Shown here in pieces: positions 60-57,155 of a stretch of 64,000 nucleotides of DNA (position 1 is its first letter; every line of letters starts with the position of its first letter). Both the position numbers and the translations under genes were made by a program. This stretch comes from Magallana gigas (Eukaryota), in assembly GCF_963853765.1 (NCBI RefSeq), contig NC_088861.1, forward strand, positions 12,276,001 through 12,340,000. The letters run 5' to 3'. Under the pieces are notes generated by a model. It had not been told where the DNA came from. It did no database searches and saw nothing but the letters and a program-made list of their open reading frames with translations.

Positions 60-2670
60 CCACGCCTTCATTTTATGATACATGTAGCCAATGCACATCT
101 CAATGATTCTGTAGTTAAACGATCATTTCCAATCAGTTTTTCTGCAAAGTTATTTGAATATCGATTTTAGTCAAAACCACAAAGAGGTATATATCTGATA
201 AATTATTGGTAATGCAGGTTAATGATAGGGACAAATGGGCTCATGGTTCAGAGGATGTGTTGGTCTCTTTTGACAATGGCATATACATATACTTATGAAT
301 TGAGATGCAATTATTAATTTCAAGACTTTGATATTTTACGCCTTGATTTATTGGTTTTTTTTTAATATTTACGTTGTCCTATACTGCAAGGTTTTTTTTC
401 AGAAACACTCAAAATTTGACCTCTTTACGTTCCAAACTCAAAGAAAAAAATCAAAAATATAGAAAATGATGTGAATATTGGTCAAAATTGTAAAACTAAT
501 GTTTTAATAATTTGCGTGCCTTTTTTTGAATGTTCGAATTAGCATTGATAACTTGAGGAATAGTTTTTAATTTTGATTTTTGTGATAAATGTACATTTCT
601 TTTTAGATTCCCCCATTTTATTTTATTTTATTTCATTTTGGTAACGTTGATCATATTTGTTGACATCGTTTTACTTAACCTTTAATTTCAAAGAAAAATA
701 GAAAATATGCTTGTTAATGAACAGAAACTACTGATTTTCAACTGAGAAAAAAATGGTAAATTATCTAATTTCATCTGTTTACTACAAGGAAATAAGAAAT
801 TGGTAATAAGTTTTAATTTTGATTTTTCTTTTGTTTAATTTATTAAAGATACAATCTACACACTAAATAAACAGATGTGTTGCAACGGACAAGTACATGT
901 AATTGATGGAAAAATGAAAAGCTGTGAAGAAGGTGCGTGCATTTGAAGTTAATTGAAGTTCAAAACGAATTTTTGGGTTTTTTCTGTTAAGTTTATTCCT
1001 CAGTCTAAATTCACATTAAGGTATTTCCATACTTGCAAAATTCTGTGATGAGAAAAAAAGGAAAAACAGAACTGTTTTCAACAAAATAGACTATATCAAA
1101 CAAAGGAAACGTTAAATTCATGTTCATTATTATGGAGAAAATATATTTTAAAATCAGAAGAAAAGTGTGATTTATTATTTTGGTATTATATCTTTTTATC
1201 AGAGGAGATTGTTGTAAAACCTAAAGAAAAGCAAGTCAAAGGTACGTATGACAATTTCATAATTAATTTAGTTTTCATTACTAACATTCTTTTGATGTTC
1301 ATTAAAACTTACTTTGTAAATCTAATGTTCAGTTGTAGATGCAGTTCAATGTGTGTATACAAAGAATGATGAAATCCTATCTGCACCGTTTGATTATAGT
1401 ACCCAGATTTGTTGCCGAAAATCAGGAGTCCTGGATAGATTTCAACAGGGACAGGAAGTGGATTGTTGTGGAGGCAATTATTAATTAAATAACATTCTTT
1501 ATATTCATTTCTTCTATAGTTTTAGCCACATGGGCCAAGCCCGTTTTAACATTTATTTCAATGTAACCATTGAACAATTGTTTTAATGATATATTTATCT
1601 TTTGAACAATGTAGATAAGAGAAATCAGATTGAAACATAACTGTGTTATGTCAGCTGTGTCAATGCACATCTCAATGATTCTGCAACAATAATTTCAAAT
1701 CATTCTTCCTTGAAAATTCATTTGAATATCAATTTTGGTCAAAACTTACAAAGAGGTGTATATCTGATAAATTACATAAATTACTGATAATACAAATTAA
1801 AGATAAGAACAAATGTGATCATGTGAAGCAGAGGATGTAGTGGTCTGTAATGACAATGGTATATACATTTACTATTCATTTAGATGCAATGAATAACTTC
1901 AAGATACTGATATATTAAGCCTTTATTCAAGTTCTTGAATATTTACGTTTGCCTAATTTTGTTTTATACTGCAAGGGGGCTTTTTTCGTTGACAATCAAA
2001 ATTTTACCTTAAGTAAAAAGGATGTTTTGTTTTCGTTTTTTTAATACAGAAAATGATATGAATATTGGTCAAAATGCAAAATTGTTAAACTAAAGTTTTG
2101 ATAATTTGATGACTGTTTTGGCAACGTCTGAATTAGCATTGACAACTTTAGCAATAGTTTACTATTTGTTTCTGATGATGAATGTATATTTTATTTTTGG
2201 TTCAGATTCCCATTTTATTATATAGTTAATATGGTTTATCATTTCGTTTTACTTTTCCTTTTTAGGTGAAATTAAAAATATGTTTATTAAATAATGAAAA
2301 GAAATTATGGATTTTTAACCGAGAAAAAAAAGTACTAAGGCCCTCCATTTACACCTATTATTTTGTTACAAGGAATGCTGATGTTACTGATTAGTTTTAA
2401 CTTTGTTGTTGTTGTTTTTAACCTTTTATAGATACAATCTACAGACCAAATATACAGATGTGTTGCGAGGGACGAGTTCATGTAATTAATGAAGAAATGA
2501 CAAGCTGTGAAAAAGGTGCGTGCATTTGAATTAGCTTTATAATTAGGTATATAATTGGGGTTTAATTTAGTTATTCTTTAGCCTAAATTCTTACATAAGT
2601 AACTCCACACTCGCAAAATTATGTGATAAAAGAAGAAAACGGAACTGATTTTAACTAAATAGACTTAAAA
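60..2670 (+). repeat. Intragenic tandem duplication of an intron+exon block (period about 1583 bp)
   Basis: Exon 849 and exon 2432 are homologous. Shared intron anchors include aatgcacatctcaatgattctg (~90 and ~1662), cagaggatgt..tggtct (~250 and ~1830) and the post-exon gtgcgtgcatttgaa. Confidence 0.85.
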
Positions 2671-3426
2671 TTATATCTATGATTTGATAAACTAGACTTG
2701 TTATCACACTTTTTCAGATCTTAGATTTAGATAAACTTAAGCACATCGTACTTTTGTTAAGCGGAAAAAGTCAGAAAAATTAGTTTTAAAACAATTTTGA
2801 TTTTATATTAAATAACATTTACCCGATTAAGGAAAAAGGGCGGGGAGAGCGATCTGACTTAGAATTACGCCCCTTTTTATTGGCTTGTCAACAGTTCTGC
2901 GTCAATAAGACGTTAACGCTCTTACGTTTAGGATTTCTTAGCTGTCAATCAAAAAGTGACGCCGCTTTGAATTTAGAGAAATTCTTAACGATTAGAAATA
3001 TCACTTAAGACAATATTTAGCGACTGCTGATTGGATGAAAAAGTTGTATGTTTTTAGTTATACTTTATGGAGATTTCTACAATTACACTTACATTCATTA
3101 AATTCATTTTGATTATTCACAGTAACATGGGGCACGGATAATCAAACAGATAAGGTCTGTGGAAATAAACCTTACTCATCGCAACACCACCATTGTTGCA
3201 GTAACGTGGTTACAAGTTTAACAGAAAGGTAAATATAGCGTTTGTTACAGAGAATAACAATTATGTTAATGAAACATATCTGCTAAGTTTTTGAAACATT
3301 GTGCATAATGGCTTTTATTTTTGTAGATGCCGCAGCAAGCAAGTAAATGTCATCCTGCGGGTTGTAAGACGCGTTTTGAAATCATTGGCTAAGAAAATCG
3401 AGGCAGGGAAAATAAATATTATTTGA
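849..3426 (+). CDS. Galaxin-like CC-repeat protein, gene 1 (5' part outside the window), with cationic C-terminal tail
   Basis: Exons 849-932, 1203-1241, 1333-1473, 2432-2515, 3123-3228, 3327-3426(TGA) splice in frame (phases 1,1,1,1,2; the donor at 1474 is GC). Translation: DTIYTLNKQMCCNGQVHVIDGKMKSCEE-EEIVVKPKEKQVK-VVDAVQCVYTKNDEILSAPFDYSTQICCRKSGVLDRFQQGQEVDCCG-DTIYRPNIQMCCEGRVHVINEEMTSCEK-VTWGTDNQTDKVCGNKPYSSQHHHCCSNVVTSLTE-RCRSKQVNVILRVVRRVLKSLAKKIEAGKINII*. Spaced CC doublets with Y..(.).Q.CC motifs are the galaxin-type repeat. Exons match genes 2 and 3. Confidence 0.8.
2690..3070. mobile_element. Probable non-autonomous interspersed element in a gene 1 intron (family unassigned)
   Basis: CpG-richer segment that begins where homology to the duplicated intron copy stops (~2670). 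No TSD or TIR identified. Confidence 0.3.
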
Positions 3427-9373: not shown

Positions 9374-10378
9374 ATGTTTATTTTATTATTACTAACTTTT
9401 GGACTCCAGTGCAAAACAGCTGCAGTAAAGAATGATAGGAGCATAGGTATTCATTTTAAAAAAAATCCTGAGATTTTTAACTGATATGGCAATGGGTATA
9501 ACATGAAAAATGATACAGTTGTAGATGACGAGTGTGTGTACACACAGAATGGTGAAATTCAGTATGCAAAATTTAATGAAACAACACAAATTTGCTGCCC
9601 CAGATCTGGTGTTCACGACAAATGTCAGCAGGAACAGGAAGTACAATGTTGCGGGGGTAAGTGGAAATTAAAGATATTATTTCCATAGCAATCATAAATT
9701 TAGACGTCTTAGTTTTTTACCAGTGTAACATTCCTAATAAAACTCAATATGCAACGTCCGAAGATGAATTGAAATCGATAATTTCATTTTATTACTTTTC
9801 TATCTGCTAATATAAGAATGTCTGTTTTAGTTTGAAAACCCTTAGTTTTTTTATTTTTATATATCTTGATTTCATTTCACTTTATTTTTGATGTTGAAAA
9901 AAGTAAAATTAAGAAATGTATTTAATTAATGAACCGAGATTGTAAATCGTTGCCTAAAGGCAAAAGAATAAGTAAGGTTATGATGAATTTGATACAAGAA
10001 AATAAGGCCTATCTGATTAGTTTTCGAGTTTTTTTTTTATTTTTCTACCAATTATAGATAAAATTTACAGACCAAGTAAAGAGATTTGCTGTGAAGATAA
10101 GTCATACTCATCACAACACCACAGATGCTGTGGAAACATAATAACAAGTTTAAGAGAAAGGTAAATAAAGCGTTTGCTACAGAAAACAACAAGTATGGTA
10201 TAGAACATGTCAGCTTTATTTCTGAAACGATATGGACATTTTTCTGTAACCTTGTAGATGTGGCAACAAGAAAGGAAGGGGCATTCTGCGCTTTACAAGA
10301 CGCATTTGGAAATCCTGGCTAAGAAAATCGAGGCGGGGGAAATCAATATTGATGATGATATTCCTTTGCAAAAAATAG
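9374..10378 (+). CDS. Secreted galaxin-like CC-repeat protein, gene 2 (144 aa), with Arg/Lys/Trp-rich tail
   Basis: Exons 9374-9446, 9519-9656, 10058-10160, 10258-10378(TAG), all GT-AG, 435 nt in frame. MFILLLLTFGLQCKTAAVKNDRSI-VVDDECVYTQNGEIQYAKFNETTQICCPRSGVHDKCQQEQEVQCCG-DKIYRPSKEICCEDKSYSSQHHRCCGNIITSLRE-RCGNKKGRGILRFTRRIWKSWLRKSRRGKSILMMIFLCKK*. Hydrophobic N-terminus reads as a signal peptide. Exon 1 and exon 2 lengths (73 and 138 nt) are identical to gene 3. Confidence 0.85.
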
Positions 10379-13564: not shown

Positions 13565-15623
13565 ATGTTCAATATGATTTTTATATGTTTGGGAGTTTTT
13601 TGCATAATGATTTCAGTGAACTGTGAAAAGAAAATAGGTATGTTTTCTATTATTTTTAAACCAAAAACATAAACTTCAGAAATTTAGCCGGCATAAATTA
13701 TTGGAAAATATTATAGTTGTAGATAGTGAGTGTGTCTACACGAAGATCGATGAAATTCTGGGTGAAAAATTTAATACAACGACACAGATTTGCTGCAAGG
13801 GGTCAGGAGTTCACGATAAATATCAACTGGGACAGGAAGTAGAATGCTGTGGAGGTAAGAAATTTTAATTAAAATCAACATTTATTCACATAAGTGCAGA
13901 AGATGATTTTCTTTATAACGACATGCCATCTTTTTTTTTAATCATTTATCCAAACGAGCAATGACCATTGAAACAATAATTAATTCTATATATTATATAC
14001 TCAGGAACAACTATTTATTAAATGCAGAGGTTGTATTTCATTGCAATTTAATAAACGTTCAAGTTTTATGGAGAAAGAATTGATTTTACTATAACAATAT
14101 TTTTACTGTGTTTTTAAACCTTTATAAAAAAAATTAAATGTAATCTATTTTAAATCGACAACTAACACACATAAAGTGCAACAAAACTGGTAACTAAAGG
14201 TTTTTAATTACAGATTGATATTTGTTACATGTTATCAAAATGAAGAGAAATAGCTATGCATATAGATTTAGGAGTTCTCTGAACTTATTTTTTTACGTGT
14301 TCAACATTATCTAACAGGACTGTTTTAAAATCGTCCCTTTTTCTATCTCAGAAAGAATTTACAGAAAGGAGAAAGAGATGTGTTGCAACGGACAAGTCCA
14401 TTCAAAGGATAACAATGTGAAAAACTGTAAACAGAGTTAGTATTCATTTGTTTCGTTTGGACGTTATTTTTAGGTTTAACAATAATCAGTTGCAGTATAG
14501 TGAACTGGTTGAGTTTTATCATTTTTGTGTCAAGTATGAACAGGAAAATGTAACGCCTCCAGAAAAATTGATAAAGCGCAATTCCTAAAAAACCTTTAAT
14601 CTTCCTTCTATAGTTAAGAAAGGTTCTCACGAAATTTATCGTGGAGGCGATATATTAAGTATTTTTCCATGGTTTAATATCATCAGATGTATATCGTGAT
14701 GGCTTCAATAATATTGTCCCTCCTACTAGTAAATTACTAAATATGTAATATATCCCTGAAATATTTTTAATGGACCCCCGAATGGATTTAAATTGTTTTA
14801 AATCCACATATCACTGCCATTGTTTGGAAACACTTATCTCAATTGAAAGTTGGTTTCTTTAAAAAAAAAAATACATTTTTGTAGCTTTTACCTATAGTTT
14901 ACTATAAACAACGCATCAGTTGCATTATTGTACCTATAAAAAAAAACCCGTTGATACAGGTTTTTACGGCAAATAATAGTAGACTAAATTAAAAATATAA
15001 TCAATCATTTTATTGATTACTAGTATTTCTATCTATGATATCAAGCATTTCAGTATATTCTACTTTTGTTAACACAATTTTTTAGTGGGTTGTCAGCTAC
15101 TTATATGCGTATGTTTCATATAAATTCCTAATTAATTTAACTTAAGATCAAAGGTTTATTTTAAAATACATTTTCTTCCTTTTTAAGAATGCATTTACTG
15201 CTTCACAGTTTAAATAACGCTATCAAATGTCAGTTGAAAATTATCTCTGGAAAGGAATAGTGGCGATTTTTAAATGACTAGGCTTGGATTGTTTTCATTA
15301 ATTAAAACCTATGTTTTTCAAGAAAAAAAAGTATATGACTTTTTACAGGAACACAGATCTTGGACAGTTGGAAAGTCACTAAAACAAGGTAAATACCTTA
15401 TCAAAGTAAGCAAGAGAATATTCAACTAATATTTATCCAATAATCATTATTGGTTCGTTTTCCCTTGCTTTTATAAAGTTTTAAACGTTTTTGTTTCATT
15501 CCTTTTAGATACAATAGGAGACATTTTATGGAAGTCAATGGATTTGTTGGGCGGGTTTTGAAATTGTGGTTAAGAAAATTAAAACAAAGAAGGCCATTGG
15601 TGATAGTGTTCAAAGCAAAATAA
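13565..15623 (+). CDS. Secreted galaxin-like CC-repeat protein, gene 3 (149 aa), with cationic tail
   Basis: Exons 13565-13637, 13717-13854, 14352-14435, 15349-15388, 15509-15623(TAA), all GT-AG, 450 nt in frame. MFNMIFICLGVFCIMISVNCEKKI-VVDSECVYTKIDEILGEKFNTTTQICCKGSGVHDKYQLGQEVECCG-ERIYRKEKEMCCNGQVHSKDNNVKNCKQ-RTQILDSWKVTKT-RYNRRHFMEVNGFVGRVLKLWLRKLKQRRPLVIVFKAK*. Confidence 0.85.
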
Positions 15624-17031: not shown

Positions 17032-17098
<67 letters not shown>

Positions 17099-22471: not shown

Positions 22472-22645
22472 CATCAAAGCATAGTTTTTGCTCCTTTGTA
22501 TCACTCTAGTAAAATTGGCACCATGACAATATTTTTCATAAGATGATGAGATGGGTCGTATGCACCTCTATCACAGCACTGAAGTCGTCATGGAAGGAAA
22601 AAATCATTTTTCCGTCAGCACAGTTTGCATGGACTATCGTAACTT
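22472..22645 (-). pseudogene. Decayed copy of exon 5 of the galaxin-NTR gene
   Basis: The reverse complement gacgacttcagtgctgtgatagaggtgcatacgacccatctcatca...tgtcatggtgccaatttt aligns to exon 38917-39084 (gacgacttcattgctgtggtaaaggtacatacgacccgtctcacca...tgttatggtaccaatttc). It contains stops and indels. Confidence 0.75.
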
Positions 22646-23139
22646 CTAGCTCAATGCCTTTCCGACAAGCGATTTTTTCAAAATTAAATCAATGTTTTAC
22701 ATAAACGTCCATGATATCCCCCTTTTCCTTATAAAACTTAACTTAAATGAAGGACAGTATATTACCGGCCGAGATTAAAAATAAACCTCATTAAATTCAG
22801 TAACATCCTCTAAAATATTCACCTGAGCAGAAGAGCAGATACTTAAATAAATGGTAAGCGACTAGATTTTTATAGATTCTGACATCTGGTGTTGATACAT
22901 TTAAGGTGTTTTCTTAGCATTTTGAAAAGGAAATTAAAATAGCTGTGTCAGAAGATGAAATCCTATGAATAGTGAATTCCCATAATTTCAAATTTTACAG
23001 AAGATTCATAAGAAAATTGATTAGCAATTTATATTCTATTAAAAAAATGATAATACCGAATCAAACTCACTTTACTTCCATACCCTTTGATTAATTTCAA
23101 TTCCAGAGCAATTTTCCAGCGTATGAATTTTTTTTTAAC

Positions 23140-26100: not shown

Positions 26101-26870
26101 CCGAGAATATCACACAGTTGAATACTTCTAAATAAAGACATTCAATTTCCAAGTTTATTTTAAAAACTTAGCCATGCTAAATATAGATAATATTAGTAAT
26201 AATTGATGGTTTTTCTTGAAATCATTACCAACAACTTCATAATATGTATAATACAATGTACCCAGTTGATCAAAAGATAAAGAAAAATTAAAGAAAGCAT
26301 AATGGAATTAAACAGCGCAGATTTTTACAATTATTTCTGAAATCTGAACTCTCGTTTCGAATCTTAAACAAAACAAATGCCTCTGAAGGCTCACTTAATT
26401 TCAAAATATTATGGATAATAATAGATCAACAAAATAGCAGATAAAATGTTTTCTTAAGGCTAAGCATGAGCATTGCAAAACGAATCATACATCTACATGG
26501 ATCGTCTACAGTTTCGATGTTTTCAAAAATAACACCCCCCCCCCACACACACACTTAGTCTTTGATAATCACACAATGTTCTTCTGGTTCAACTTTCATT
26601 TTATCTGTAGAATAAACAATTTCTGGTTTTTAATTATTTTGACACAATGAAGTTTTATCTTACAAATCTTTCAGTGCCCACACAGTTTCTTCATATCACG
26701 GTGTGGGGCGAGGATACGAGATTTGTAAATTTTGGAAAGTCCCTTGCCTTCTTCACGAACTTGGTCTGGTTGCGGGTTCCTGACGCGATATGTGTCAGGG
26801 CCCAGGAAGTCTAACTGCAGTTTGGGCCTTCTTTCAGTTACAACTCATCTAAAAAATGACTTGGTTTTTG
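23140..26870. repeat. Segmental duplication, copy A (matches ~44610-47797; its right part also matches 34430-35900 and 50050-50350)
   Basis: Collinear anchors: atgacgggttgtc/gagcatgacggtcaccatcgacctataaaag (23290 and 44760), gaagatattcaatgaagtagac (23640 and 45087), ccgatcacttact.caggtgttaa (25495 and 46572), tagtcaagccga (26028, 47012, 34560, 35030). Confidence 0.9.
26671..26828 (-). pseudogene. Dead copy of importin-alpha exon 63208-63380 (copy A)
   Basis: The reverse complement reads ...SWALTHIASGTRNQTKFVK.. versus [20 protein letters not shown] in the live gene. Indels and stops present. Confidence 0.88.
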
Positions 26871-27470
26871 TTCTTTCTAGAGGAAATCTATGTCATTTTT
26901 TTTGCAAACTTTGCTAAATATTCCATAGAATAAATAATGAAGAAATTCTAAGTTAAAGCACAACTTTTTTATGAAAGTCCGTCTTAAATTTTGAGTTTTT
27001 GTTTTAAGTATATCTTTCTTCCTAAAGCTTCTAGAACATGCATACTCCCATTTCGGTCCATCAACTCACTCAAGAGGAAGTCTTATATTAGAAACTTCTA
27101 TTAATTGTAATTTCTGTACTAACAGTTTATGTATTAACTATATGATGAAATACAACAAGACATATGAAGTTAAAGTTAACTTTGTTGTTTATTTCGAAAG
27201 GCATTAGATTACAAAATGGGGGTATTTTAAAGCTATGAATAAAACTCAATCAACATATTCATACAATATTTTAATAGGTTACATGTTAACACATTTTGAG
27301 GCATTTTCATGCAATCAAGAATGCACATATATGTTCTTTCAAATACTATTGACATATTTTGCATAAAAACACATGAAAACATCCATGAGACATAACAGAT
27401 ATTTGATGATTAAAAACATGATATATAAATGCATTAACAATGTAACAAATGGCTGTGTAGTGTGTAGTAG

Positions 27471-27611
27471 TTACCCCATATAATATTGTTGGTTATGTGC
27501 AGATACCCGATGGGCGTGGTCATAATGACACGAGGGAGCGTAGCTCCCGAGTGTCGTTATGACCACACCCATCGGGTATCTGCACATAATCAGCAATATT
27601 ATATGGGGTAA
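27471..27611. repeat. 141-bp near-perfect palindrome (69-bp arms, GTA loop) at one end of a ~1.1-kb insertion (~27455-28598)
   Basis: Arms 27471-27539 and 27543-27611 have 6 mismatches. The whole ~1.1-kb segment is absent at the homologous site in copy B (~36470-36490). Confidence 0.9.
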
Positions 27612-35588: not shown

Positions 35589-37720
35589 ACTTAGTCTTTG
35601 ATCATCACACAATGTGCTTGTGGTTCAACTTTCATTTTAGCTGTAGAATGAACAATTTCTGGTTTTCAATAATTTGACACAATGAAGATTAATCTTTGAA
35701 ATTTTTCAGCGCCCACACAGTTTCTTAACATACAAGGTGTGGGTCGAGGATATGAGATTTATGAAGTTTGGAAAGTCCCAAGCCTTCATCACAAACTTGG
35801 TCTGGTTGCTGGTTCCCAACGCGATATTTGTCAGGGCCAAGGAAGTCTAACTGTAGCTCGGGCCTTATATCAGTTAAAACTCATATAAAAATGACTTGGT
35901 TTTTGTTCTTTCTATATCGATTTTTTTTCAAACTGCGCTAAATATTCCATAGAATAAATAAGACGAAATTCTAAGTTAAAGCACAACTTTTATATGAAAA
36001 TGCGTGTTAAATCTTGTGATTTTCTTTTCAGTACATCTTTCTTCCTTCAGCTTCTAGAACATGCATACCCCCACATCGGTCCATCAACTCACTCTAGAGG
36101 AAGTCTTGTATTAGAAACTTCTATTAATTGTAATTTCTATACTAACAGTACATGTATTAACTATATGATGAAATGCAACAACACATATGAAGTTAAAGTT
36201 AACTTTGTTGTTTATTTCGAAAGACATTAGGTTACAGAATGGAGGCATTGTATAGCTTTGAATAAAATTCAATCAACACATTCATACAACATTTTAATAT
36301 ATATGTTAACACATTTCGAGAAATTTTTATGCAATCAAGAATGCACATATACGCTCTTTCAAAGACTATTGCCATATCTTGCATACGAACACATTATCTG
36401 TGAGACATAACAGATAATTGATGATTCAGAACATGATATAAAAATTCATTAGCAGTGTAACAAATGACAGTTCAATGTCAGTGAGCTAGATTATGATCAC
36501 TTGGTTCTCTACGTGCAATTTACAACAAAACATCTTCAAGTTTTTTTTTCTTCAAAATTCACTCTTTTTCACCAAACTGTTCTTTGCAATTTTATAAGGC
36601 TCGGTTTATGAATATCTTATCCAGCAATGAACACGTAGCAAGAACACTTTGGTCAAATGAATTTTGGGGATTCATCACTTTATCATTACATCTATGATCT
36701 GTCTGGCACACGTTTATTTTCCATTGCGGATCCAATCTTTCCGGGATTCAACTGTTTCAATTTGGTTGAAAACATTCACAGATTAACAGAATGGTTTTAT
36801 TTTAGTATTTTTCATGAAATATTACTCTGCTTTTTCTTGTATTTCGGCCTGTACTTAAAAAGTGTAGTTTCTTTTCTTGACAACAGTTAATATACAAGTT
36901 CATACATTTTGTTTTGTAAATACCTTTCGTTGGTACGGATATCGATGTTGGCGCGATGGGCCGAATGTTAGTGCAAACTGTACATCGTAATCATAATCAT
37001 CCACGTAAAATCTTATGGATGTTTCGAATAATGTAACTACTACAGCTTTTGGATCGTCTTTTTACTATTTGCACTATATTTCTTCTTGGTGGGAAAATGA
37101 GGTCGCTATCTCCAAGATGAACAATATTTTGTGAAGAATGGAAAACGATATCCGTTAAGAGCAAGAATGACTTCTTTTTTAATTTGTCCATATTAGTACA
37201 GTTACTGGGTATCAGCAAAATGTGTTGTTCTGTTTTACTTGGAACATTAGTGGAGTTATAGATGTTTGCTTTCACTGTTACATCCAAATATGAAATATGA
37301 ATTTGCGGACTTAAGTTGTACACTTTTATCGGGTTTACGATTTTTAATATGTAACCTGAAAATGAATGAGTCAAAATAGATTATATTTACCTGATAATAT
37401 ATGATAAAATATAAGCCTAGTATAAACTAATTTTTTCAAGTTAAAAACGTAATACAAGTAATACGTAACTGACTGTGAAAAGGCTAAATTTTTTTATATT
37501 TTTGTAGGATGTCGCCAAAAGACAAACAAAAAATTGTTTGTAAATTGGCTTAATCTGTATGACTTTGTAAAAGGAAAATAACGATTGATAAACAATATTT
37601 TACCATTTTTTCTACACACGTCGGCTGTGCTGCTTATGAACCCTATTCTCTGTGTCTTGGGCTGTGACCATATCGAACATAAACCAGAGGGCGATGGACT
37701 GTTGCAACTATAAGAAGAAT
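34430..37720. repeat. Segmental duplication, copy B (matches ~25940-30745 and ~50050-52990), with an internal ~480-bp local duplication (34540-34920 and 35020-35400)
   Basis: Collinear anchors: aatgactttccca.cagag, ttctagaacatgcata, cacttggttctctac and the last-exon region. Confidence 0.88.
35706..35864 (-). pseudogene. Dead copy of importin-alpha exon (copy B)
   Basis: cagcgcccacacag...cacaaacttggtctggttgctggttccc..gcgatatttgtcagggcc matches 63220-63380. Splice donor lost. Confidence 0.88.
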
Positions 37721-40700
37721 TTAGTGTTTATCTTTTGTACGTGGAAACAATGGATTAAACTGGACATATAGATCACATTTGGTTATGATGTTATGAAACA
37801 CATGGAGAAAACAAAGTAGAAGAAAAATCATGATTTGAAATATATAATAACGTTTCTAAGTTAAAACTTACAATATTTGATCATGATATGTACTTTTAAA
37901 AATCCTTTTCAAAAAGTAAGCTATGACTTGCTGAGTTTGACAAAAGAACTTAGACAAAGTCGTTAATATTTTCAGTCTCATTGAATGGTCTTTAATGAAC
38001 ATAAAACCATATTTTACAACTGTTTTGATTTTTACAATTGTACTTTAGAGCCATTAAAATCTAACAATGTTTAGTTCATGATGTATTAGCATTCATAAAT
38101 TTGGTCGTGAGTCTTTGTAAAACGCAGTCCTGTACCTTTCTCTGACAATTTGACCTGTTGTACCAAGCAGAAGTGACGTACTTATAAGATTAAAGGTAAT
38201 TCAAATACTTGTTCCTGAAAAAGATCTTTCATTATAAAGGTATCCCTTAGTCCAATAACATTTTCAGGCAAAACTAAAGCGATAAAATTTCTAGATAGGA
38301 ATAGTGACGATACAATGGGCAATTAATAAGATGGGTGTAAAATGTCTACCTTTCTGCTTTTCCTTTTACTTCACCATGACAACAAATCTGGTTTCTAGGA
38401 TCGTAGGCAAGCGTCCCTGGATTACAGCATCGTTTTCCCATTTTATGTGCCCCTCTATGAATTTCATTGTTGCAGCAGAGGTCTGATTTCTTGTCGTAGC
38501 TTTGCCTCCCACAAAAATCGGATTTTTTCTTTTCCTGCTTTTTACAAGAAAAAAAGGAGGTCGCATTTTTATTGCAACAACTAGTGTGATCGGGTAAAGT
38601 CTTTTCAATAGTGGATCCATTTTCGCAGCAAAGCTGCGTCGTTGAGTAGTACACATTGTTTCCACAACAATGTAATTTTGAATTATAATTTGTTGTGTAT
38701 ACAGTACCTAAGATGAAACAAAAATGTAGACAGAATGTACATTCTTTTTTTAAAAATTAAAACACAACGTGAATTTTTGACAAATTAAAATTGATTCGAA
38801 GAATTTGTTTATAATTTTGCCCTTTTTTGTTTAAACTAATTTGACTACTATTGAAATTTGCTACTTCCATTGAACATTACAAGAAACTGAGCTCCTAGTA
38901 TAAAAATAATATATACCATCACAACAGATTTGCTGCCCCTGTTGCATTGCTGTGGAGAAATTGGTACCATAACAACACTCTTGGTGAGACGGGTCGTATG
39001 TACCTTTACCACAGCAATGAAGTCGTCCATCGGAGGGGAACACTTGTGTCTTGCAGCACAGTTCTTGTGAGGAATCGTACAATCCTATTTGTAATTAAAC
39101 AAACTTTAGCTTTGGAAATTTATGTAAAATCATACTTAATATCATTAAAATTATCCAGCTATTCATTTCATAAAATGATAACAATTTTAAGATCGAACTG
39201 TAAATATGTTGTACTTACCTGTTCCACAACATTGACCATTTTTGGGCTGAATTTTCTTTTCACCAGATCCCCTACAGCACTGTTTAGTCCTTTTATCATA
39301 CACTTCCGATCCACAGCATCGGAAGTGCCGGTCGTACGATGAAATATTCCACAAAGTGGAGTCTTCACAACATTTTTGTGTCTGTCTGTTAAACAGAGTT
39401 CCATTACAGTAGTCATGTCCTAATGGAACAACCTTGTCCCTAACGCATCGTGAATGGGTCCTATTGAATGGTGTTGTTTGGTTGCAGCAACCATCATTCT
39501 TTGTATAGTTGTTCCCACAGCATGACATGCCTAAAGAGTAATTTTTTCAAGGTAAGACTGCTATATAGAATTGATGCATAGATAAATAGATATTTTACTT
39601 TTCAGTCGAATTAAAAAGTTATCTAGGCTTCCATCATTTGAAGGGGGTGCATAAATGGAACTATCAACCGGGTGTGTGTGAAGGGTTGTCCTGTAAATAT
39701 GGATGAGACCTTAAACGACTAACCAAGGTTAATTGCCATGGCCGATTGAGTTCATTCAAATTTTTAAAAAAATGCTTACACTTGCAGTAAGCATTTACTC
39801 GTATCCGGCAATGGACCTTACTAGTATTTGAACCCAGAAAGCATGGCAAGAAAAAAAAGAAGTTTTATTATTATTCTATTCTGTTTTTCCTTATAATATA
39901 CGCCATTGATGTAGTGGGATAGTTATTATAAAATTTAAAGGAAGAAAACAAACACCATTGCTTGTGATAAAAGGAGCTGATTTCATATACTAATATATGA
40001 TATCACTGTCCAGAAATATTTTAATTTGCTCTACAAAATTAAAGGGAACTATACACGATTTCAGATTGAAAAAATATTTTTAATTTTGTAAATAAAATGG
40101 TTTATTTGTGTATTTTGAATGATTCACCAAAAGTTGAATGTAAGAAATTAAGTTTCAGGCGAGATAGGGAGCAAAAAAGGCGTTGTTATATGTAAACAAA
40201 GTCTTATATTTGATTACTACAAGTAACTTTGTAAACTAAAGAAATACCATTTCATTGACAAAATATATTGTGGCAAACAAGATGAGCTGATTCATTGCAT
40301 TTACAAATACTTTCATCAACAACAAAATACAACATTAGATTGACACTTCTACCGATACAACATATAAGTTAACAATATCAGGTCTCGAGTTTTATTTACA
40401 AAACAAAGAACTCTAACCTTTGTTACTCGCTTGTAACTCGATATTTGACTTTCAAATGTTAACAAAGCTTTAAAAACATCCATTTTGACTATTCTTGACA
40501 TTGAAAATGCAAAATCTAAATTTTTTGCTGAAAATCGTGTCCACGTCCCTCTAGAATGATAAACAGGAAATACGCTCTGATAAGAAGAAAATAAATGACT
40601 CGAGTAAGGACTATCGACGGGGCAGAGATTGTGGGACGGTTCTTATTTATCTCTACTTTGCGTGATAATGTTTATATCTTTTTAAAAAAGTCTTACTAAA

Positions 40701-42088
40701 ACAATGTATTTAAAGGCATATATGCCGTTTTTAACGCTGTTTCTGATATGTTAGAAACCCGACCAAATCTTTGTCCACATAAAAGAAAANNNNNNNNNNN
40801 NNNNNNNNNNNNNNNNNNNNNNNNNNNNNNNNNNNNNNNNNNNNNNNNNNNNNNNNNNNNNNNNNNNNNNNNNNNNNNNNNNNNNNNNNNNNNNNNNNNN
40901 NNNNNNNNNNNNNNNNNCATATTTATAAACGCGATTCACGTAAGTGCAAACTTCCGCATGAATGTAATGAAATGTAATCGAGAAGGACAGCGTGGAGGAG
41001 AGGAATGACTGCAAGATTGTTTACAAAATTAAATGTTGAAATACTTTTTTGACGTTGAAAAAAATATATTCCTTCAAGACCTTAGCTTCGAAACACTATT
41101 AACTATTATCTAAAGACCACCATTTTTATTTATACCAGATCAGAAAATAAATAAAACATAACGTCAGTATTACCCTCGACTCAAGACAAGAGGGTCTGTT
41201 TTTCTTTATATTGTCTACGAATGCGTTAGCCTGTTACTAGAATATCGACATCGCTTTCGCGACGATTTCTTGTTTACATACTAAACAGGTTTGTGACATA
41301 TTTAAATAGGGGCGTTTACTAACCGGAGCTGGCAGTTAATAAATTGATTAGAAATATACAATACTTTTAAACGCGTTTGGACTACATTGTATAAACTGCA
41401 AAAAATCTCTGACTTATGTAGATCACCAAAGTTACCTTAACTACTTTAACAACTTACTTGACATGTACATTTTACTTTTTGAGGTCGACATTTCCAAGCA
41501 AAAATGCACTGTCAAAATAAAGACACATAACACTACCCCCACACACACAAGCACAGACAAACANNNNNNNNNNNNNNNNNNNNNNNNNNNNNNNNNNNNN
41601 NNNNNNNNNNNNNNNNNNNNNNNNNNNNNNNNNNNNNNNNNNNNNNNNNNNNNNNNNNNNNNNNNNNNNNNNNNNNNNNNNNNNNNNNNNNNNNNNNNNN
41701 NNNNNNNNAACAAACACAAACTTACCAACAATTTGATCCACCTGAAAAATGTTCGTCCCACAACATATTTGTTCTTTTCCTTGGTTTTTTCCGCTTTGAA
41801 CATATCTTTCATGTAAAGAATTCGACTGGCAACAAATCTTATCCAAAGTTCTGTATGTTACACCTACAAAATATGTTGCAAAAATATATCGTGTACTTAG
41901 ACTTCCAATGTCGATTAGCTTCTAAGGTATATTTAAATAAACCCGCAGATCTTTTCTAACAATAAAATGTATCGTGTTACACCTACAAATGAAAGTTTTA
42001 TCATCTTGAAAGACTACAGATTTTTATGGAATATTAAACAACATAACTGGAGTATTATTTAACCCTATCAAATATGTCTAATTTACTT

Positions 42089-42146
<58 letters not shown>

Positions 42147-42206
42147 ATGGAATATTAAACAACACAACTGGTGTTTTTTAACCCCAACAAATGTGTCTTA
42201 TTTACT

Positions 42207-42252
<46 letters not shown>

Positions 42253-42687
42253 TCCACAACAGTCTAGTTCCTCGTCGCTGTCTTTGATACGATTAAACAA
42301 GGTGTTGTTGCAGCAAACTTTGGTCTCACGATTGTAAGATTCAAGGTGTGGAACACCTCTTGAAAACGTAAGGCAACTTTCGGCACTTACTGTAAAAAAA
42401 AAGAAACACCTGTACATATGATTTGTGAATTTAATACCAAACAGTATTATTTGATAAAACAATTGTGGGGCAATTTATACGTCTAACGAATTGCAAAACG
42501 GTCTCATCAGTATATATTTTTAAAATTAAAAAAGTTTCTTTAATTTGTATAATTTTTTTTCGTGCACGTGAAAATTAATTTTCAGTATTGTATCTATTTT
42601 GGAAATGTTGACATAACACATACCTGTAGTATTGCATCGAAGTAAACAAACAACAAACCAAATACAGATTTGGTAAGGTACGTCCAT
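36997..42687 (-). CDS. Secreted galaxin-like CC-repeat protein with probable C-terminal NTR/C345C domain (copy B, 546 aa, intact)
   Basis: Exons 42624-42687, 42252-42389, 41726-41863, 39219-39530, 38917-39084, 38350-38707, 37604-37707, 36997-37355(TGA), all GT-AG, 1641 nt in frame. Signal peptide MDVPYQICIWFVVCLLRCNTTVSA, then many galaxin-type CC repeats (e.g. YDKRTKQCCRG, YDPSHQECCYG, YDPRNQICCHG), then CSIW...DVCRKNGYILKI...LLIPSNCTN...KKSFLLL...VKRRSKSCS. Two N-gaps lie in intron 3, so an additional phase-1 exon could be hidden. Confidence 0.85.
40043..40550. mobile_element. Degenerate Kolobok-like non-autonomous element in intron 3
   Basis: Left end TTAA|AGGGAACTATACACGATTTCAG. Right end GCTGAAAATCGTGTCCACGTCCCT (reverse complement AGGGACGTGGACACGATTTTCAGC). 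The right TSD is degenerate (ctag). Confidence 0.65.
40790..40917. other. Assembly gap (N run)
   Basis: 128 consecutive N. Confidence 0.99.
41564..41708. other. Assembly gap (N run), flanked by CA-rich sequence
   Basis: 145 consecutive N. Confidence 0.99.
41933..41982 (-). pseudogene. Partial decayed duplicate of the 5' end of exon 3, with intact acceptor
   Basis: ttgtag|gtgtaaca... repeats the exon-3 acceptor. It reads GVTRYILLLEKICGFI* versus GVTYRTLDKICCQ. Confidence 0.55.
42020..42250. repeat. Two (CT)n tracts within a ~120-bp tandem duplication in intron 2; (GA)n starts at the splice donor
   Basis: atggaatattaaacaaca.aactgg occurs twice, each followed by (CT)n. The minus-strand donor reads GTGAGAGAGAG. 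Confidence 0.9.
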
Positions 42688-50295: not shown

Positions 50296-53200
50296 TTAGT
50301 TACAACTCATTTGAAATAAAGGAGCTGGTTTTTTTCTCTCTAGAAGAAATCTAAATTGATTGTGTTTTTCAACCTGCGCTAAATATTCCACAGAATTAGA
50401 ATGACGAAATTCTAAGTTAAGAGAAATTTTTAATCTTAATGGAGATTTTCATTTTAGAATGTCTTTCTTCCTACAGCATCTGGAACATGCATATCCCCGT
50501 ATCGGTCTATCAATTCTCTCAAGAGGAAGTCTTAAATTATATTAAAAACTTCTAATAATTGTAATTTTTGTAGTACTGTAACAATACGTGTATAAACTAC
50601 TTAGAAAAGAACGAAAGAGAACAACACATACGAATTAATGTTGTTTATTTCGAAAGACAGTATGTTACAAAATGGGGTTATTTTATAGTTCCTTAAATAA
50701 AACTCAATCAACACATTCATACATATTTTTGATATACATGTATGTTAATATATAAGACGGCATATTTAAGAATTCAACAGTACAAACATACACTCTTCCA
50801 AATGCTCTTGTCATTTTGCATAAGAGGCCAATATGAGACATAAAAGATATTAGATGAACATGAAATGAATACATTAACAATGTAACAATTGGCTATTGAA
50901 CACATACACTCTTTCAAATAACATTGCCATTTTTGCATAAGAACACAACATGTGATTTTCTTTTCTGTCCACCTTTCTTCCCACAGCTTCTAGAACATGC
51001 ACACCCCAATTAAGTCTCATAATAGATATTTCTATTTACTGTCATCTCTGTAGTAACAGTACTTATTAACAACAATATGACGAAGGAAAACAACACATGT
51101 AAAGTTAAAATTAATTTTGTTGTTTATATCGAAAAAATTACGTTACAAAATGCTTCATATTTCCTTTGATTATACTCAAGAAAATAAAAATCATTTATAT
51201 TTTTTGCTAAAATAGGTTTACATATAAATATGAGTTATTCTTATAAAAACTCTGGCCATTTTCTAAAATAAAAAATGAACACGTTGAGGCATAACAAACA
51301 ATTGTGAACATGATTTTAAAAATACATTAATAAATTAAATGCACCAAATGACTTTTCATTGTCATTTCATTAGAAAAAGGTCACTGGGTTCTCTATATCC
51401 AGTTTACAAAAAAAAACATCTACAAGACAATTCTATTTCTCAATTCACTCCTTCCTCTCGCCAAACTGTTCTTTGCAATTAAATTAAGCTCACAAAACAT
51501 TCTTACAATATAATACATATAAGTACATATTCATTACCTGCATGCAGTTAGTTATCATTCAAAAACCCTGATCATATATATTTAAATCAATTCCTAATAC
51601 ACCAAACCATATGACTTCGTGTTTCAACGACACACTTTGGGAAATGGTTTGGTATGCAGAGGGCACCGCAATCGTTGTTAAGCACTCCAAACACTCAGAA
51701 AAAAACAATAGTATAAGCGTTAAATCACACGATTTGGCTTGATTCATGTTTCAGCGACACGAACTTCGTGTGGTTTTGCGTCCAAAGTGCTGAATCTTTA
51801 ATTTTATGAATTTATTATCTATGGCTTAAAAGATGCAATACACGGTTAAAATTTGTGTAAGTATAAACAGTGTATCATACGATATCCGGCAAACAGCACA
51901 TTGCACGACCATTTTGGTGAAATGAACTCTGGGGATTCATTATATCATACCATGATATCTTTGAACAGGAACAGTCTGTCAAATGTTTATTTTCCATCGC
52001 AGATCCAATCTAACATTCGAAAGTATAATTTCAACTTTTACTTTGCTTTTCCTTGCATTTTATCAAAATTTAGGTGTTTTCGTCCTGTGCTTTAAAACAG
52101 AATGTTATTTATTTTCTAAGGATTGATAAACAAGTTCGTACAACTTGTAAAAATATCGGATGTTAGCATGACGGGGGTCATTGCTTTGTGCTAACTGTAC
52201 ATCCTACTCATAACTGTCCACTTAGAATCTTATGGATGTTTCGAACAATGTAACTACTACAGCTTTTGAATCGCCTTTTTACTATTTGCTCTGTCTTTCT
52301 TCCTGATGGAAAAATAAGGTCACTGTCTCCAAGATGAACAATGTTTTGTGAAGAATGGAAAACGATATCTGTTAAGAGCAAGAATGTTTTTTTTCGGAAT
52401 TTGTCCATATTAGTACAGTTACTGGGTATCAGCAAAGTGTGTTGTTCTGTTTTATTTGGTCTATAGGTGGAGTTATAGATGTTTGTTTTCACTGTTACAT
52501 CCAACAATGATATTTGAAGTTGCGAACTTAAGTTGGATACTTTTGTCAGGTTTTCAATTTTTAATCTATAACCTAAAAGCATTAAATTAAAAAAAAGATT
52601 ATAATCTCATAATATAGGATACAACATAAGCGTACGATAAACGTATAATATTATATCACATTTTTAAGCGTTATACCAGTAATAACCGACAGTGAAAATA
52701 TTAAGTTCTTTTATTTTTATCGGATTTAGCTATAATAGTTAAACAACTTGTTAATAAATGTACGTTTGTAAATTGGCTTAACCTGTAAAAAATTAAGGGA
52801 AAAAAAGAAGAAATAACGATTGATAATTTATATTTTACCATTTGTTCTACACACGTCTGCTGTGTTGTTTATGAATCTTTTTCTCTGTGGCGCTGACTGT
52901 GAACATAACGAACATATACCAGAGGTCTGTCTATCCATTCTAATAGGTGCTGGAAGGGACGTTGGACTGCTGCAACTATAAGATGAAGAGAATGTTATGG
53001 TATACATTGAAATATCAGTGTATATGAAAGAACATAATACTCAACATATTACCAAATATAATCATCGTTTTAAACTCAATCATCACAATAGTAAGTTGAC
53101 CATCAATTGTATTGTATAATGAAACAACTAATTTAAAAGAATAAAACATATGATCAAAAGAATTTTTTAAATAAGCAAGAAATAGAAATGGGATCTGTTG

Positions 53201-55433
53201 ATTCTTTAATATCTTTTAAAGTTTTAACACAAGTATTTGTTCAACCAATTCGGTTTAATGCTCTTTAAAATACAGGATAAACAGATTCAGACAATAAGAT
53301 ATAGACCGATATCATCTTAAAGCAAATCTTCAGTAGCTATGTTTTTTGAAGAACCTGAGATACCAGTACATACTAATTCATACCTTTCTGTTTTTCTCTT
53401 CACTTCACCATAACAACATGTCTGGTTTCTAGGATCGTAGGCAAGCGTCCCTGGATTACAGCATCGTTTTCCGGTTTTCATTGCTCCTCTATGGATTTCA
53501 TTGTTGCAGCAGAGGTCGGATTGTTTGTCGAAGCTTGCCCTCCCGCAATCAGAATCGGCCTTTTCCCATTCCTGCTTCTCACAAGAATAATAAGTAGCAT
53601 TTCTTTTGCAACAACTGGTGTGATTAGGTGAAGTCTTTTCTATCTTGATGCCATTTTGGAACAGAGGTGCGTTGTGGAATAGTACACATTGTTACCACAA
53701 CAACGTAAATGTAACTTATAGTCTATAGTGTATATGGTACCTGCAATGAAACATTGAAAATTAATGTAAAACATAATTCGGATTTCAAGAAAACACCATA
53801 GGATTTTTAAAAGTTAAATGTTACTTTTATTCAACATTAAGAGAAAATGGGTTAGGCGAGCCTTGTGCATACCTTTACAACAGATTTGCAGTCCCTTTTT
53901 CATCGCCCTCCCACCACAGCAGTCTTGGTGGGCTGGATCATATGTACCTTTACCACAACATTGACGCCGTCCAAAAGACGGGAACACTTGATTCTTGCAG
54001 CACAGTTCTTGTGAGGAATTGTACAATCCTATATGTAATTAAACCAACTTTAGCTTTGCTTTGGAACTTTATGAAAATTATTCTTTTTATCATTAACATT
54101 ATCCAGGTACATGTATATTCATGTTATAAAATGATAACACTTCAGATTTTAAAATAAGCTGTAAGAAATGTTGTACTTACCTGTTCCACAACATTGACCA
54201 GTCTTGGGCTGAATTTTCTTTTCACCAGATCCCCTACAACACTGTTTAGTCCTTTTATCATACATTTCCGATCCACAGCATCGAAAGCGTCGGTCGTTCG
54301 ATGAAATATTCCACAGAGTACTAGTGGAATCTTCACAACATGTTTGTTTCTGTCTGTTAAACAGAGTTCCATTACAGTAGCCGTGTCCTAATGGAACAAC
54401 CTTGTCCCTAACGCATCGTGAATGGGTCCTATTGAATGGCGTTGTTTGGTTGCAGCAACCATCACTCTTTGTGTAGTTGTTCCCACAGCATGACATGCCT
54501 AAACATAATTTTGTTTTTCAAGGTTAGACTGTAATGTGGTAGTGTCGCATATATTGAATAAATATTTTACATTCAAATATATTTACAATCACCAAATCTG
54601 GTGCGTATGAATACAATCTTCTTTCTGTATTTCTCGAAGAACATGACTGACTCTCCTTGCAACTTCAAACCGGATCACGGCCTGGTTTTATACTTACTCT
54701 GATATAAACATTTCATTGATGTAAAATTATTTTCAACAGTTTATTAATTCATTATTTTACCAAAGGTTTCATTCATCGAATAACAGAATAAAAATAAAAT
54801 TGTGTACGTAGAATTTATTGCATTGTGCACTATTATTGTTAGCATAACTCGGATGTTCAAATGGCTCTTCCGTTAATTGTGCATTAATGTTTTAAGATAA
54901 ATCATAATTGCGGAAAGGGAATAAATGTTTCTAAAAATATATATCACATAGCGTATGTGATACTTGTTTTGAAAATCAAAAAAAAAATTAAACACATAAA
55001 CAAATTGTTGTTTGTGAAGGAAGGGCAGTGGCTGGAGTTATTTAAATAATACTTTGGCTCAGCAATTTTGAAATAAAAGAAAGTATGATAAACAGGAAAT
55101 ACGCTCTGATAAAAAAAAATACCGGAGTAAGGACTATCGAAGGGGAACAGACATTTTTTTTTAAATGTTGCAATAGATTTGATTTATCTTTAGTTTGCGT
55201 GATATTTGTTTATATCTTTCAAAACAAGTACATACTCTTACACATTTAAAAAAAAAAAAAGAAAAAAAAAAAAGGAAAATCGCATTCGTTGGGACAAAAA
55301 GAGAACTCTCTTTTGTGTTTCAAATAAATTTAGCTTTTGATCCTTTCTAAAAGGATCTGCGTTTAAAGTATGTTAACAGTAACCTTAACAACCTGGAAAA
55401 ACTTTCATGCATATTGTATTTTGATTCCATTAA

Positions 55434-55824
55434 AGCTGAACACCGCTAGTAAATAGGCACCGTCACACAGATACCTGGTATATAAACCCTTCGATTTCGT
55501 TACACCCGATTGCACACCTGAACCTCGTGGCCGACATGTAGTATTCCTTTCGTGGTCTTTAGATTTTATGCATTTTTTTCTTATCTTATGACCAATTTAT
55601 TTGATGTTAGTATTCTCCTGGCTTCAAAAAGGTGCGTAAAACTTGATAGTTTCATCGCGACCGAGTAACACGGCGAGACAAAATGTACGTCCACACAGGT
55701 GAGACCTCTACAGCGAAGTACTTTGAACTGTTTAGAGGTCTGTCCCTTATATAAGGGTTGCAGGGACAGCAGTGAGTAAAGAGAAATATGGCGGACAGTG
55801 CCTATTTACGAGCGGTGTTCAGCT
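55434..55824. mobile_element. 391-bp MITE with ~31-bp TIRs and TTAA TSD (Kolobok-like)
   Basis: Left AGCTGAACACCGCTAGTAAATAGGCACCGTC, right GACAGTGCCTATTTACGAGCGGTGTTCAGCT. TTAA at 55430-55433 and 55825-55828. Confidence 0.92.
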
Positions 55825-55906
55825 TTAATGCCGATTTATAGAACGTTATTTTTGAGATCGGAAATTCCAAATAAAATGCATTGTAAAAATAAAGACACAT
55901 AATGTT

Positions 55907-55956
<50 letters not shown>

Positions 55957-56175
55957 AACTTACCAAAGGCCACTTGAAAAATGTTTGTTCCACAACATAT
56001 TTGTTCTTTTTTTTGGTCTTCCCCACTTTGAACATGTCTCTCACGTAAAGAATTAGGCCCGCAACAGATCTTATCTAAGACGTTGTATATAACATCTACA
56101 AAATATTTTGCAAAATTATATAACGTGTGATTAGAATGTAGATAACGATTATTATATTCAGGTATATTTAAATAC

Positions 56176-56252
<77 letters not shown>
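55907..56252. repeat. Two (CT)n tracts in introns 2 and 3 of copy D
   Basis: ~55907-55953 and ~56178-56252. The latter begins at the donor (GTAAGAGAGAG on the minus strand). Confidence 0.95.
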
Positions 56253-56255
<3 letters not shown>

Positions 56256-57155
56256 CTCCGCAACACCCAACTTCTTCTTTACTGTCCTTATTCCGATCAT
56301 ACAAGGTTCCATTGCAACAAACCTTTGTATCACCATTGTAATATATTCCAGAAGATGTGAGGCATCGGTCAGCATTTACTTTGAAAGGAGAAATAAAACT
56401 ATTCGTTTCAAGTACGTGATTTGACTCGGGGAAAACCCATAAAACAACCCCTGAGAAATCAAAATGACCACGATCATTTGAAAATTTTAAATAATCAAAA
56501 ATTCACAACGCTTTAGTAAAGGACATTGGTAAGCTTGAATGTCAGTTTTCGAGAGGTCAAAAGATCTTTTTTTTTATTGCAAGTAATTGGAGCTTTGGCA
56601 TATCTATTTATTTAAAACTGTCGAGTTCAAACGTTGGTTGGACTTTAAATCGAGCAGAACTTGAATCAAAATTAAAATGAATTGATATAACTTTTGACAT
56701 ATTAAATGTAAGCATTGATCGAATTGTATTTCGGTAACGGGTTGATTTGAATCAATATTTTTAAAAAAGAAAGATTTTTCAGTAATTTGATTAATGATAA
56801 AAAAAATAATTAAAAAACAATGAAAAGACGTTTTTATTTTATGGCCTTGTGCTGTTAAAAACTTCAATCTGGCTGTTTTACAAAGAATTAAAAAATCATT
56901 AAATTGCTAAAACTTAGACCTTTTTTTTAAAATAAAGTTTCAAATATTTTTTTTATCGAATTGGGCAAATAATATTTCAAAAGAAAAAATATTAGACAAA
57001 CCCGTATTGCCTCCAAATATGACAAGGAAAACAATGCAAATATGAAATGCGACTTCCATCGGTATTTTGTTGTCTGTATTCTTATGCTATCAACTACAAA
57101 GTACTTGCATAATTGTTTTTCAAAACCTATTTATACATACCCAGATCGAGATCAA

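Follow-up and report, generated by a model that had tools for sequence, protein, structure and literature searches.

The stretch of DNA analysed here, referred to throughout as the window, spans 64,000 nucleotides (nt) of chromosome C9 of the oyster Magallana gigas (C9:12276001-12340000) and carries two kinds of galaxin-like gene that converge on each other from opposite strands. On the + strand lie short genes, here also called mini-galaxins, in which di-cysteine repeats are followed by a separate basic tail exon, and on the - strand lie longer genes, here called galaxin-NTR, in which the repeats are followed by a linker and a domain predicted to resemble the NTR module. Genome-wide searches covered the whole 564-Mb assembly (29 contigs). 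The genes of the two kinds are laid out as follows, with protein lengths in amino acids (aa).

849..3426, + strand: gene 1, 3' part; exons 849-932, 1333-1473, 2432-2515, 3123-3228 (phase-2 end) and tail 3327-3426.
9374..10378, + strand: gene 2, 144 aa; exons 9374-9446 (signal), 9519-9656, 10058-10160 and 10258-10378 (tail).
13565..15623, + strand: gene 3, 149 aa; exons 13565-13637 (signal), 13717-13854, 14352-14435, 15349-15388 and 15509-15623 (tail).
36997..42687, - strand: gene B, galaxin-NTR, 546 aa; exons 42687-42624, 42389-42252, 41863-41726, 39530-39219, 39084-38917, 38707-38350, 37707-37604 and 37355-36997.
52208..57059, - strand: gene D, paralogue of B; eight-exon layout as in B, with the signal exon at 57059-57002 and an exon 2 of 126 nt.

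Eight exons make up a galaxin-NTR gene. From its N-terminus, the protein has a signal peptide, a region of di-cysteine repeats that spans about 370 aa, a Ser/Pro linker and the NTR-like domain. Our hand-built eight-exon model of gene B agrees with RefSeq protein XP_034330949.2 throughout (0 differences in 546 aa). The window contains three runs of N (20137-20275, 40790-40917 and 41564-41708), the last two of which interrupt gene B within its third intron, which separates exon 3 (ending at 41726) from exon 4 (starting at 39530). The coding sequence of gene B is untouched by these two gaps, as follows from the exon 3-4 join in RefSeq and from the same join in the M. angulata orthologue of the gap-free gene D. 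A look-up of contigs encoding XP_034330949.2 returned none. Compared with B, gene D lacks one base near 53660 in this assembly, which throws exon 6 out of frame and eliminates one CC pair. Its M. angulata counterpart, a protein of 546 aa that maps to D with 91-100% identity, is intact. Membership of the galaxin family is clear from the Pfam Galaxin_repeat model (PF24748, curated cut-off 28 bits), which scores 39.5, 32.4 and 49.6 bits in exons 4, 5 and 6 of gene B, and 76-147 bits in full-length relatives of the long genes (117-147 for P0004, P0009 and P0011). Galaxin-NTR copies occur in M. angulata and Saccostrea and, in the present genome, on C4, C6 and C9. Away from C9, galaxin genes that carry this C-terminal domain were located at C4:29714001-29724000 and C6:4674001-4684000; the C6 gene belongs to a group of six or more galaxin-repeat genes clustered at C6:4.62-4.73 Mb. 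The introns after exons 2 and 3 of B (42251-42212 and 42146-42093) and of D (56253-56177 and 55953-55908), read on the - strand, contain long (GA)n microsatellites, and in both genes the tract after exon 2 begins right at the donor.

The sequence-only reading had assigned the long genes a linker and an NTR-like domain, and this is borne out as a predicted fold in models of two paralogues. An AlphaFold model of an allele of B (P0014) has a mean predicted local distance difference test score (pLDDT) of 70, rising to 70-80 in the domain core, and adopts an NTR-like fold over residues 395-535. Its top Foldseek matches in the PDB are mostly the C345C domains of C3, C4 and C5 and the NTR domain of PCOLCE1 (1uap, probability 1.00), with TIMP-2 and a few other oligonucleotide/oligosaccharide-binding (OB) folds lower down; VIA-align gave the domain a Z score of 7.8 over 122 residues. 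When P0014 was compared independently of Foldseek with 48,161 PDB representatives, six NTR/C345C chains ranked first (Z 6.9-7.5), followed by generic OB folds and then by agrin NtA, the meteorin NTR domain and TIMPs. The model of the C4 paralogue P0011, which is about 35% identical to B overall and about 31% identical in the C-terminal exon, gave the same NTR/C345C ranking (Z 8.3). Across both models, NTR-family domains make up the top six to eight of the 48,161 representatives, with 115-126 residues aligned. In both predictions the domain forms a five-stranded OB barrel with its terminal helices packed against the barrel. Language-model features of residues 395-546 likewise pointed to NTR clusters, at a borderline score of 0.90. 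Exon 8 and six full-length relatives gave no match to the NTR/TIMP families in Pfam (PF01759, PF00965; none at E <= 0.1-1), and a profile of the C-terminal domain returned nothing relevant among PDB sequences. Hence, we accept the domain as NTR-like in the sense of a predicted OB-barrel fold, without Pfam family membership.

The NTR-like domain has an isoelectric point (pI) of 10. NTR modules have six conserved cysteines that form three disulfides; the oyster domain contains five cysteines in B, six in D and its orthologue and seven in the C4 paralogue, and the conserved cysteine positions in the domain alignment are CxxC, DxC, (P)CxC and KxC(P). A search of exon 8 against 1.84 billion representative proteins returned 10 matches, one of them repetitive and probably spurious. 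All matches that carry a species name come from oysters (M. gigas, M. angulata and Saccostrea echinata), several others being ENA, JGI or Logan fragments, and the named full-length matches are annotated as 'galaxin-like' or 'uncharacterized'. In a word-index protein search, exon 8 returned three fragments only and residues 395-546 of P0004 returned three oyster proteins only.

Genes 2 and 3 are small and complete within the window. For gene 3, contigs of three RNA runs contain GT..AG joints at exactly all four introns. The last intron of gene 2 (10161-10257) is covered unspliced by contigs of three RNA runs, and no joint is listed for it; when this intron is read through, a stop codon directly after the split codon would give a tail-less protein, and the same AGG-TAA/TAG arrangement is present at the last junction of genes 1, 3 and B. 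The unspliced RNA of gene 2 could be pre-mRNA, could derive from a paralogue or could reflect DNA carry-over. In single-exon scans with the Galaxin_repeat model, exon 3 of gene 2 scored 21.4 bits (E 2.6e-4), which is under the 28-bit cut-off, and exon 2 of gene 2 gave no match. The proposed kinship of the short genes to galaxins is supported by their di-cysteine spacing and by a link, described below, between their exon 2 and that of a true galaxin-like protein. A protein word search for annotated short proteins found only unspliced open reading frame (ORF) calls and one old partial model.

Gene 1 had been taken for a third short gene, which proved to be an effect of the window edge. The complete gene has 13 exons and encodes 469 aa in a joined ORF that is open over 1410 nt; eight of its exons precede the window, the signal exon being about 5.5 kb upstream at window -5537..-5459. 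Its body includes five pairs of a 141-nt and an 84-nt exon. All five 141-nt exons end in GC donors in the context AG|GCAA(A/G/T)(T/C), one at 1474-1475 in the window and four upstream, and these may reflect recent tandem copying or, alternatively, GC-AG introns that have been conserved. The repeat body of gene 1 has a net charge of -30, and the bodies of the short genes range from neutral to strongly acidic.

The cationic tail that had been described after the last junction of the + strand genes was confirmed, with a net charge of +9 in gene 1, +15 in gene 2 and +11 in gene 3. Linear cationic amphipathic antimicrobial peptides combine a net positive charge with an amphipathic helix that spans at least about 18 residues. 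In an 18-residue window, the helical hydrophobic moment of the tail reaches 0.79 in gene 1 and 0.87 in gene 2, values that at most 0.4% of shuffled sequences reach, and 0.60 in gene 3, which 22% of shuffles reach. Comparison of the gene 2 tail with that of its paralogue at C9:12.2229-12.2240 Mb gives 7 non-synonymous and 6 synonymous differences, or 0.083 per non-synonymous site (pN) and 0.252 per synonymous site (pS). The ratio pN/pS for this gene pair is about 0.33 in the tail and about 0.11 in exon 2. These values indicate that the tail is coding and under some constraint, which is weaker than that on exon 2; at the sequence level, the tails evolve fast. The tail exons of gene 1 (3327-3426) and gene 2 (10258-10378) are homologous DNA separated by a one-base indel, such that the second halves of the two tails are read in different frames, both readings being basic. 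The frame of gene 2 is also used by its paralogue and by one gene of the upstream array that was examined.

The cluster is considerably larger than the window suggests. A profile built from 13 short-gene exon-2 modules and run over the whole genome located about 58 such modules within C9:11.655-12.290 Mb. Most of them are on the - strand, and genes 1, 2 and 3 belong to a + strand block at 12.217-12.292 Mb. The window is thus the right-hand edge of an oyster tandem array of about 630 kb on chromosome C9, and the 56-kb cluster of the sequence-only reading corresponds to a local view of it. Within that view, the short (+) and long (-) sub-arrays do adjoin and converge, as scaffolded. A third long gene, here C9b (P0013), sits within the short-gene array at C9:11.976-11.984 Mb.

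The two kinds of gene had been thought to share a signal-peptide exon, a 138-nt exon 2 and a particular last junction, and these features hold to different degrees. The phase-1 end of the signal exon is common to genes 2, 3, B (42687-42624) and D (57059-57002), and no sequence is shared among these exons; phase 1 after the signal peptide is generic for secreted modular proteins. Exon 2 is 138 nt long, runs from phase 1 to phase 1 and ends in ..CCG in genes 2, 3 and B (9519-9656, 13717-13854 and 42389-42252), and it measures 126 nt in D and 141 nt in gene 1, so that its length is not a family constant. The last junction is in phase 2 throughout; gene 3 reads ..T-R|Y there, and the other four genes (1, 2, B and D) read ..E-(R/S)|C. 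It should be noted that any phase-2 intron with an AG|GT donor gives R or S at this position, so that only the preceding E and the following C are informative. The arrangement CC-x9, a split codon and then C at the last boundary is present in every long paralogue, including those of Saccostrea, and in genes 1 and 2.

A link between the two kinds comes from exon 2. Outside the C9 array, the exon-2 profile had a single significant match in the genome, at C4:29717547-29717678 (E 6e-8, 41.5 bits), and this match is exon 2 of the galaxin-NTR gene P0011. When exons 2-8 of B were searched with tblastn, matches were found in the same order along this C4 gene, whose exons 2 and 7 end in g|gt as in B. 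Exon 2 of the neighbouring genes B and D is absent from the genome-wide profile matches. In a local search with the same profile, these exons scored 17.1 bits (B) and 12.0 bits (D), close to the 14.4 bits of an internal repeat of B, and their similarity to the short-gene modules is thus at a generic level only. In a tree of exon 2 (24 rows, 45 columns, many unresolved forks), B, D and C9b stand apart from the short-gene modules, among which the C4 exon and two first modules of the C6 cluster are placed. At the DNA level, Smith-Waterman comparisons detected no similarity beyond that of shuffled sequences between the ends of the penultimate exons, or between the tail exon and exon 7.

The grouping of exon 2 of the two sub-arrays, the first half of a test set beforehand, was therefore not seen: profile scores were generic and B, D and C9b stood apart, in a weak tree. 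The idea of exon swapping on a common scaffold likewise found no support, as exon 2 of the neighbouring genes is generic in its match, junction DNA is without similarity and the signal exons have no shared sequence. What stands is that the two types of gene belong to one galaxin-like superfamily, with common intron phases and a common last boundary nine residues after CC.

The window contains several other features besides these genes.

1203..1242, + strand: signal-exon relic, the 3' half of the gene 1 signal exon, within a 1.6-kb tandem unit; a second copy lies at window -2151.
20137-20275: assembly gap that separates the short-gene block from the long-gene relics, so that their adjacency depends on the scaffold.
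22546..29456, - strand: dead long-gene copies, exon-5-like at 22546-22641, exon-2-like at 24681-24776 and exon-8-like at 29140-29456, all with stop codons (tblastn with the exons of gene B, and genome search).
26703-26798, 35739-35834, 47712-47786 and 50140-50258, - strand: four importin-alpha exon relics, decayed copies of one exon that is live at 63191-63349.
60045..63756, - strand: importin-alpha (KPNA-like) gene with ORFs of ARM repeats, which borders the array and is the source of the relic exon copies.

The relic of the gene 1 signal exon is probably not spliced in, since its inclusion would break the reading frame. The importin-alpha exon relics mark the tandem units in which the galaxin-NTR genes were duplicated. 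The window holds four such long-gene units, two of which are wrecks with stop codons. Between the two blocks, the + strand genes stop at 15.6 kb, a locus-specific segment occupies 19.15-19.45 kb and the long-gene relics start at 22.5 kb; no coding sequence was detected on either side of the gap at 20137-20275. The locus-specific segment (300 bp, 19150-19450) has four copies in the genome, all of them in this C9 locus. The other copies lie at C9:12.2297 and 12.2318 Mb, downstream of a paralogue pair of genes 2 and 3, and at 48848-49084 in the window, upstream of gene B, which means that sequence of the short-gene unit is also present inside the long-gene array. The spacer 3' of gene 3 contains a tandem duplication of about 0.9 kb (16264-17173 versus 17178-18111, 92.5% identical). 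Between genes 2 and 3, a dispersed repeat of about 580 bp (11270-11860) has some 3,300 first-look candidates genome-wide at 75-86% identity, an RNA depth of about 2,000 in all runs, contigs with loose ends on both sides and a partial reverse copy at 48071-48243; it had no match among Rfam families. Given its dispersed copies, high RNA depth and loose contig ends, this repeat is probably a non-autonomous transposable element.

From these observations we lean, on balance, towards a history in which an old oyster galaxin-NTR lineage gave rise to the tail-bearing mini-galaxins, which were later amplified. The galaxin-NTR genes would be the older kind, and in the window they would have been duplicated four times together with an importin-alpha fragment, leaving B intact, D frameshifted in this assembly and two wrecks. 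The short kind would have arisen once from an ancestor of galaxin-NTR type by losing the inner repeats and the NTR-like domain, before expanding to about 58 exon-2 modules. What the mini-galaxins would have kept is the signal exon and exon 2, followed by between one and five repeat modules and by the boundary of the last repeat (CC-x9, phase 2), with one short, fast-evolving basic exon standing where the linker and NTR exons would follow. The + strand block of the window would be an inverted part of a mostly - strand array. Descent from a galaxin-NTR-type ancestor is suggested by the position of the N-terminal module after a phase-1 signal exon, by the last boundary and by the C4 exon-2 match. 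We read the two kinds as putative old cousins, and not as exon swaps between present neighbours. A more elaborate version seems improbable to us, in which a galaxin-NTR gene that lost its NTR exons gained a new, fast-evolving basic exon at exactly the old phase-2 boundary and in which retention of the last intron regulates the tail. A single gene would then supply both armed and unarmed forms, and the ancestral genes an NTR-bearing form for docking.

A number of points weigh against the history that we favour. The two kinds are linked through a module of 45 aa, and the tree, whose resolution is poor, places two C6 first modules among the short-gene modules. No similarity is left in the junction DNA, and none connects the tail to exon 7, so that coincidence could account for the boundary that the two kinds share. 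The gap at 20137-20275 lies between the two blocks, whose adjacency is scaffold-based. The tails are not conserved across the array; the tail of gene 2 has a single relative genome-wide, and that of one upstream-array gene is non-amphipathic, with a moment of 0.29. The structures behind the NTR assignment are predictions made with moderate confidence (pLDDT about 70-80, Z about 8), and the sequence-profile searches of Pfam and the PDB were negative.

The exon-swapping model, which holds that swaps between neighbouring genes have repeatedly joined one scaffold to either of two C-terminal modules and that the two versions act as a co-regulated functional pair, draws on the common phases, the 138-nt exon 2 that B has in common with genes 2 and 3, the shared ..E-(R/S)|C boundary, the proximity of the genes and the recurrence of the 300-bp segment, which follows gene 3 and is found again upstream of gene B. 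We nevertheless judge it very unlikely: the short-gene profile scores exon 2 of B and D at the level of an internal repeat, these exons lie apart in the tree, exon 2 varies in length (126 nt in D, 141 nt in gene 1), R/S follows automatically from phase 2 with AG|, and the junction DNA is dissimilar. Alternative splicing between short and long forms is excluded, since the genes are on opposite strands. It may instead be that no special relationship exists, the short family having come from another, NTR-less galaxin, with shared traits that are generic and an adjacency that is a by-product of tandem duplication in a hot spot. The nesting of C6-cluster first modules with short-gene modules, the generic nature of phase-1 modular exons and the lack of similarity at the junction would all be consistent with such an origin. 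This model, which we regard as rather unlikely, would have to accommodate the fact that a galaxin-NTR exon 2 is the sole significant outside match of the profile and that the CC-x9 phase-2 boundary is common to both kinds; moreover, the C6 gene that supplies a first module also carries the C-terminal domain.

Both kinds would be secreted extracellular proteins. In the manner of non-TIMP NTR modules, the NTR-like domain (pI 10) would attach the rod of repeats to a partner, either a protein or a glycan. TIMP-type inhibition needs the first Cys of the domain as a free N-terminus. Such protease inhibition is unlikely here because repeats of about 370 aa and a linker precede the domain, and a free N-terminal Cys would need cleavage. 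By analogy, therefore, docking as in PCOLCE, complement proteins and netrins would be a better comparison than TIMP. In the small forms, the basic and partly amphipathic tail would confer affinity for anionic surfaces such as microbial membranes, mucus, matrix or mineral. Galaxins are known as matrix proteins of the skeleton or shell in corals and in a freshwater mussel (PMC3748352, PMC10045328), which raises the question of whether the tails are antimicrobial at all. They may instead be pro-regions that are cleaved away, or basic segments that anchor the protein to shell matrix, mucus or glycosaminoglycans, and the family would then have a role in biomineralisation like that suggested for other galaxins. 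The net charge of -30 of the gene 1 body, acidic like many matrix proteins, and the poor conservation of the tails would suit such a role. Against it stand the squid galaxins, which are cationic and yield peptides that inhibit bacteria (PMC12773714), and the high helical hydrophobic moment of the gene 1 and gene 2 tails; we consider a matrix role possible, if somewhat doubtful.

The closest known parallel is the expanded cationic family EsGal1-10 of the squid Euprymna scolopes, from whose repeats peptides that inhibit bacteria have been derived (PMC12773714). Like the oyster genes, EsGal1-10 are molluscan, secreted and built of tandem di-cysteine repeats, and they form an expanded set of paralogues with a net cationic charge. 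They differ in that charge and activity reside in the squid repeats; the oyster genes place the charge in a last exon of its own, behind a repeat body that is neutral to acidic. No NTR-like domain has been reported for EsGal. In squid, galaxins are known to act as antimicrobials that regulate symbionts. Coral galaxin and bivalve matrix proteins, such as cysrichin of Hyriopsis, share with the oyster genes the Galaxin_repeat (PF24748) in secreted Cys-rich repeats and differ from them in having neither a C-terminal NTR-like domain nor a basic tail exon. Literature searches with the identifiers of the oyster genes and proteins brought up neither a paper that names them nor evidence of their presence in a shell proteome. 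The NTR/C345C modules of PCOLCE1, C3/C4/C5, netrins, sFRPs, meteorin, agrin (NtA) and TIMPs resemble the oyster domain in its predicted OB barrel with flanking helices (115-126 residues, Z 7.1-8.3), and in PCOLCE, the complement proteins and netrins the module is likewise C-terminal in a secreted multidomain protein. Unlike these modules, the oyster domain lacks a Pfam match, is 8-17% identical to them, has a variable number of cysteines (5-7) and has no free N-terminus. No paper joining galaxin repeats to an NTR module was found in the literature searched, nor did we meet there a large oyster-only array of mini-galaxins with a separate basic tail exon. What appears to be new here, then, is a predicted, divergent NTR module on a galaxin together with a putative derivative family that bears tails.

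For the present, the gain is a solid one in annotation and not a new mechanism: the NTR-like domain has been recognised, gene 1 has been given its structure and the array its extent. Oysters are farmed animals with heavy losses to disease. If the tails are antimicrobial, or if the NTR-like domain has a defined partner, this array would be a case of lineage-specific expansion of secreted effectors in a farmed animal. It would also illustrate, on the history proposed here, how a short new exon can take the place of a domain.

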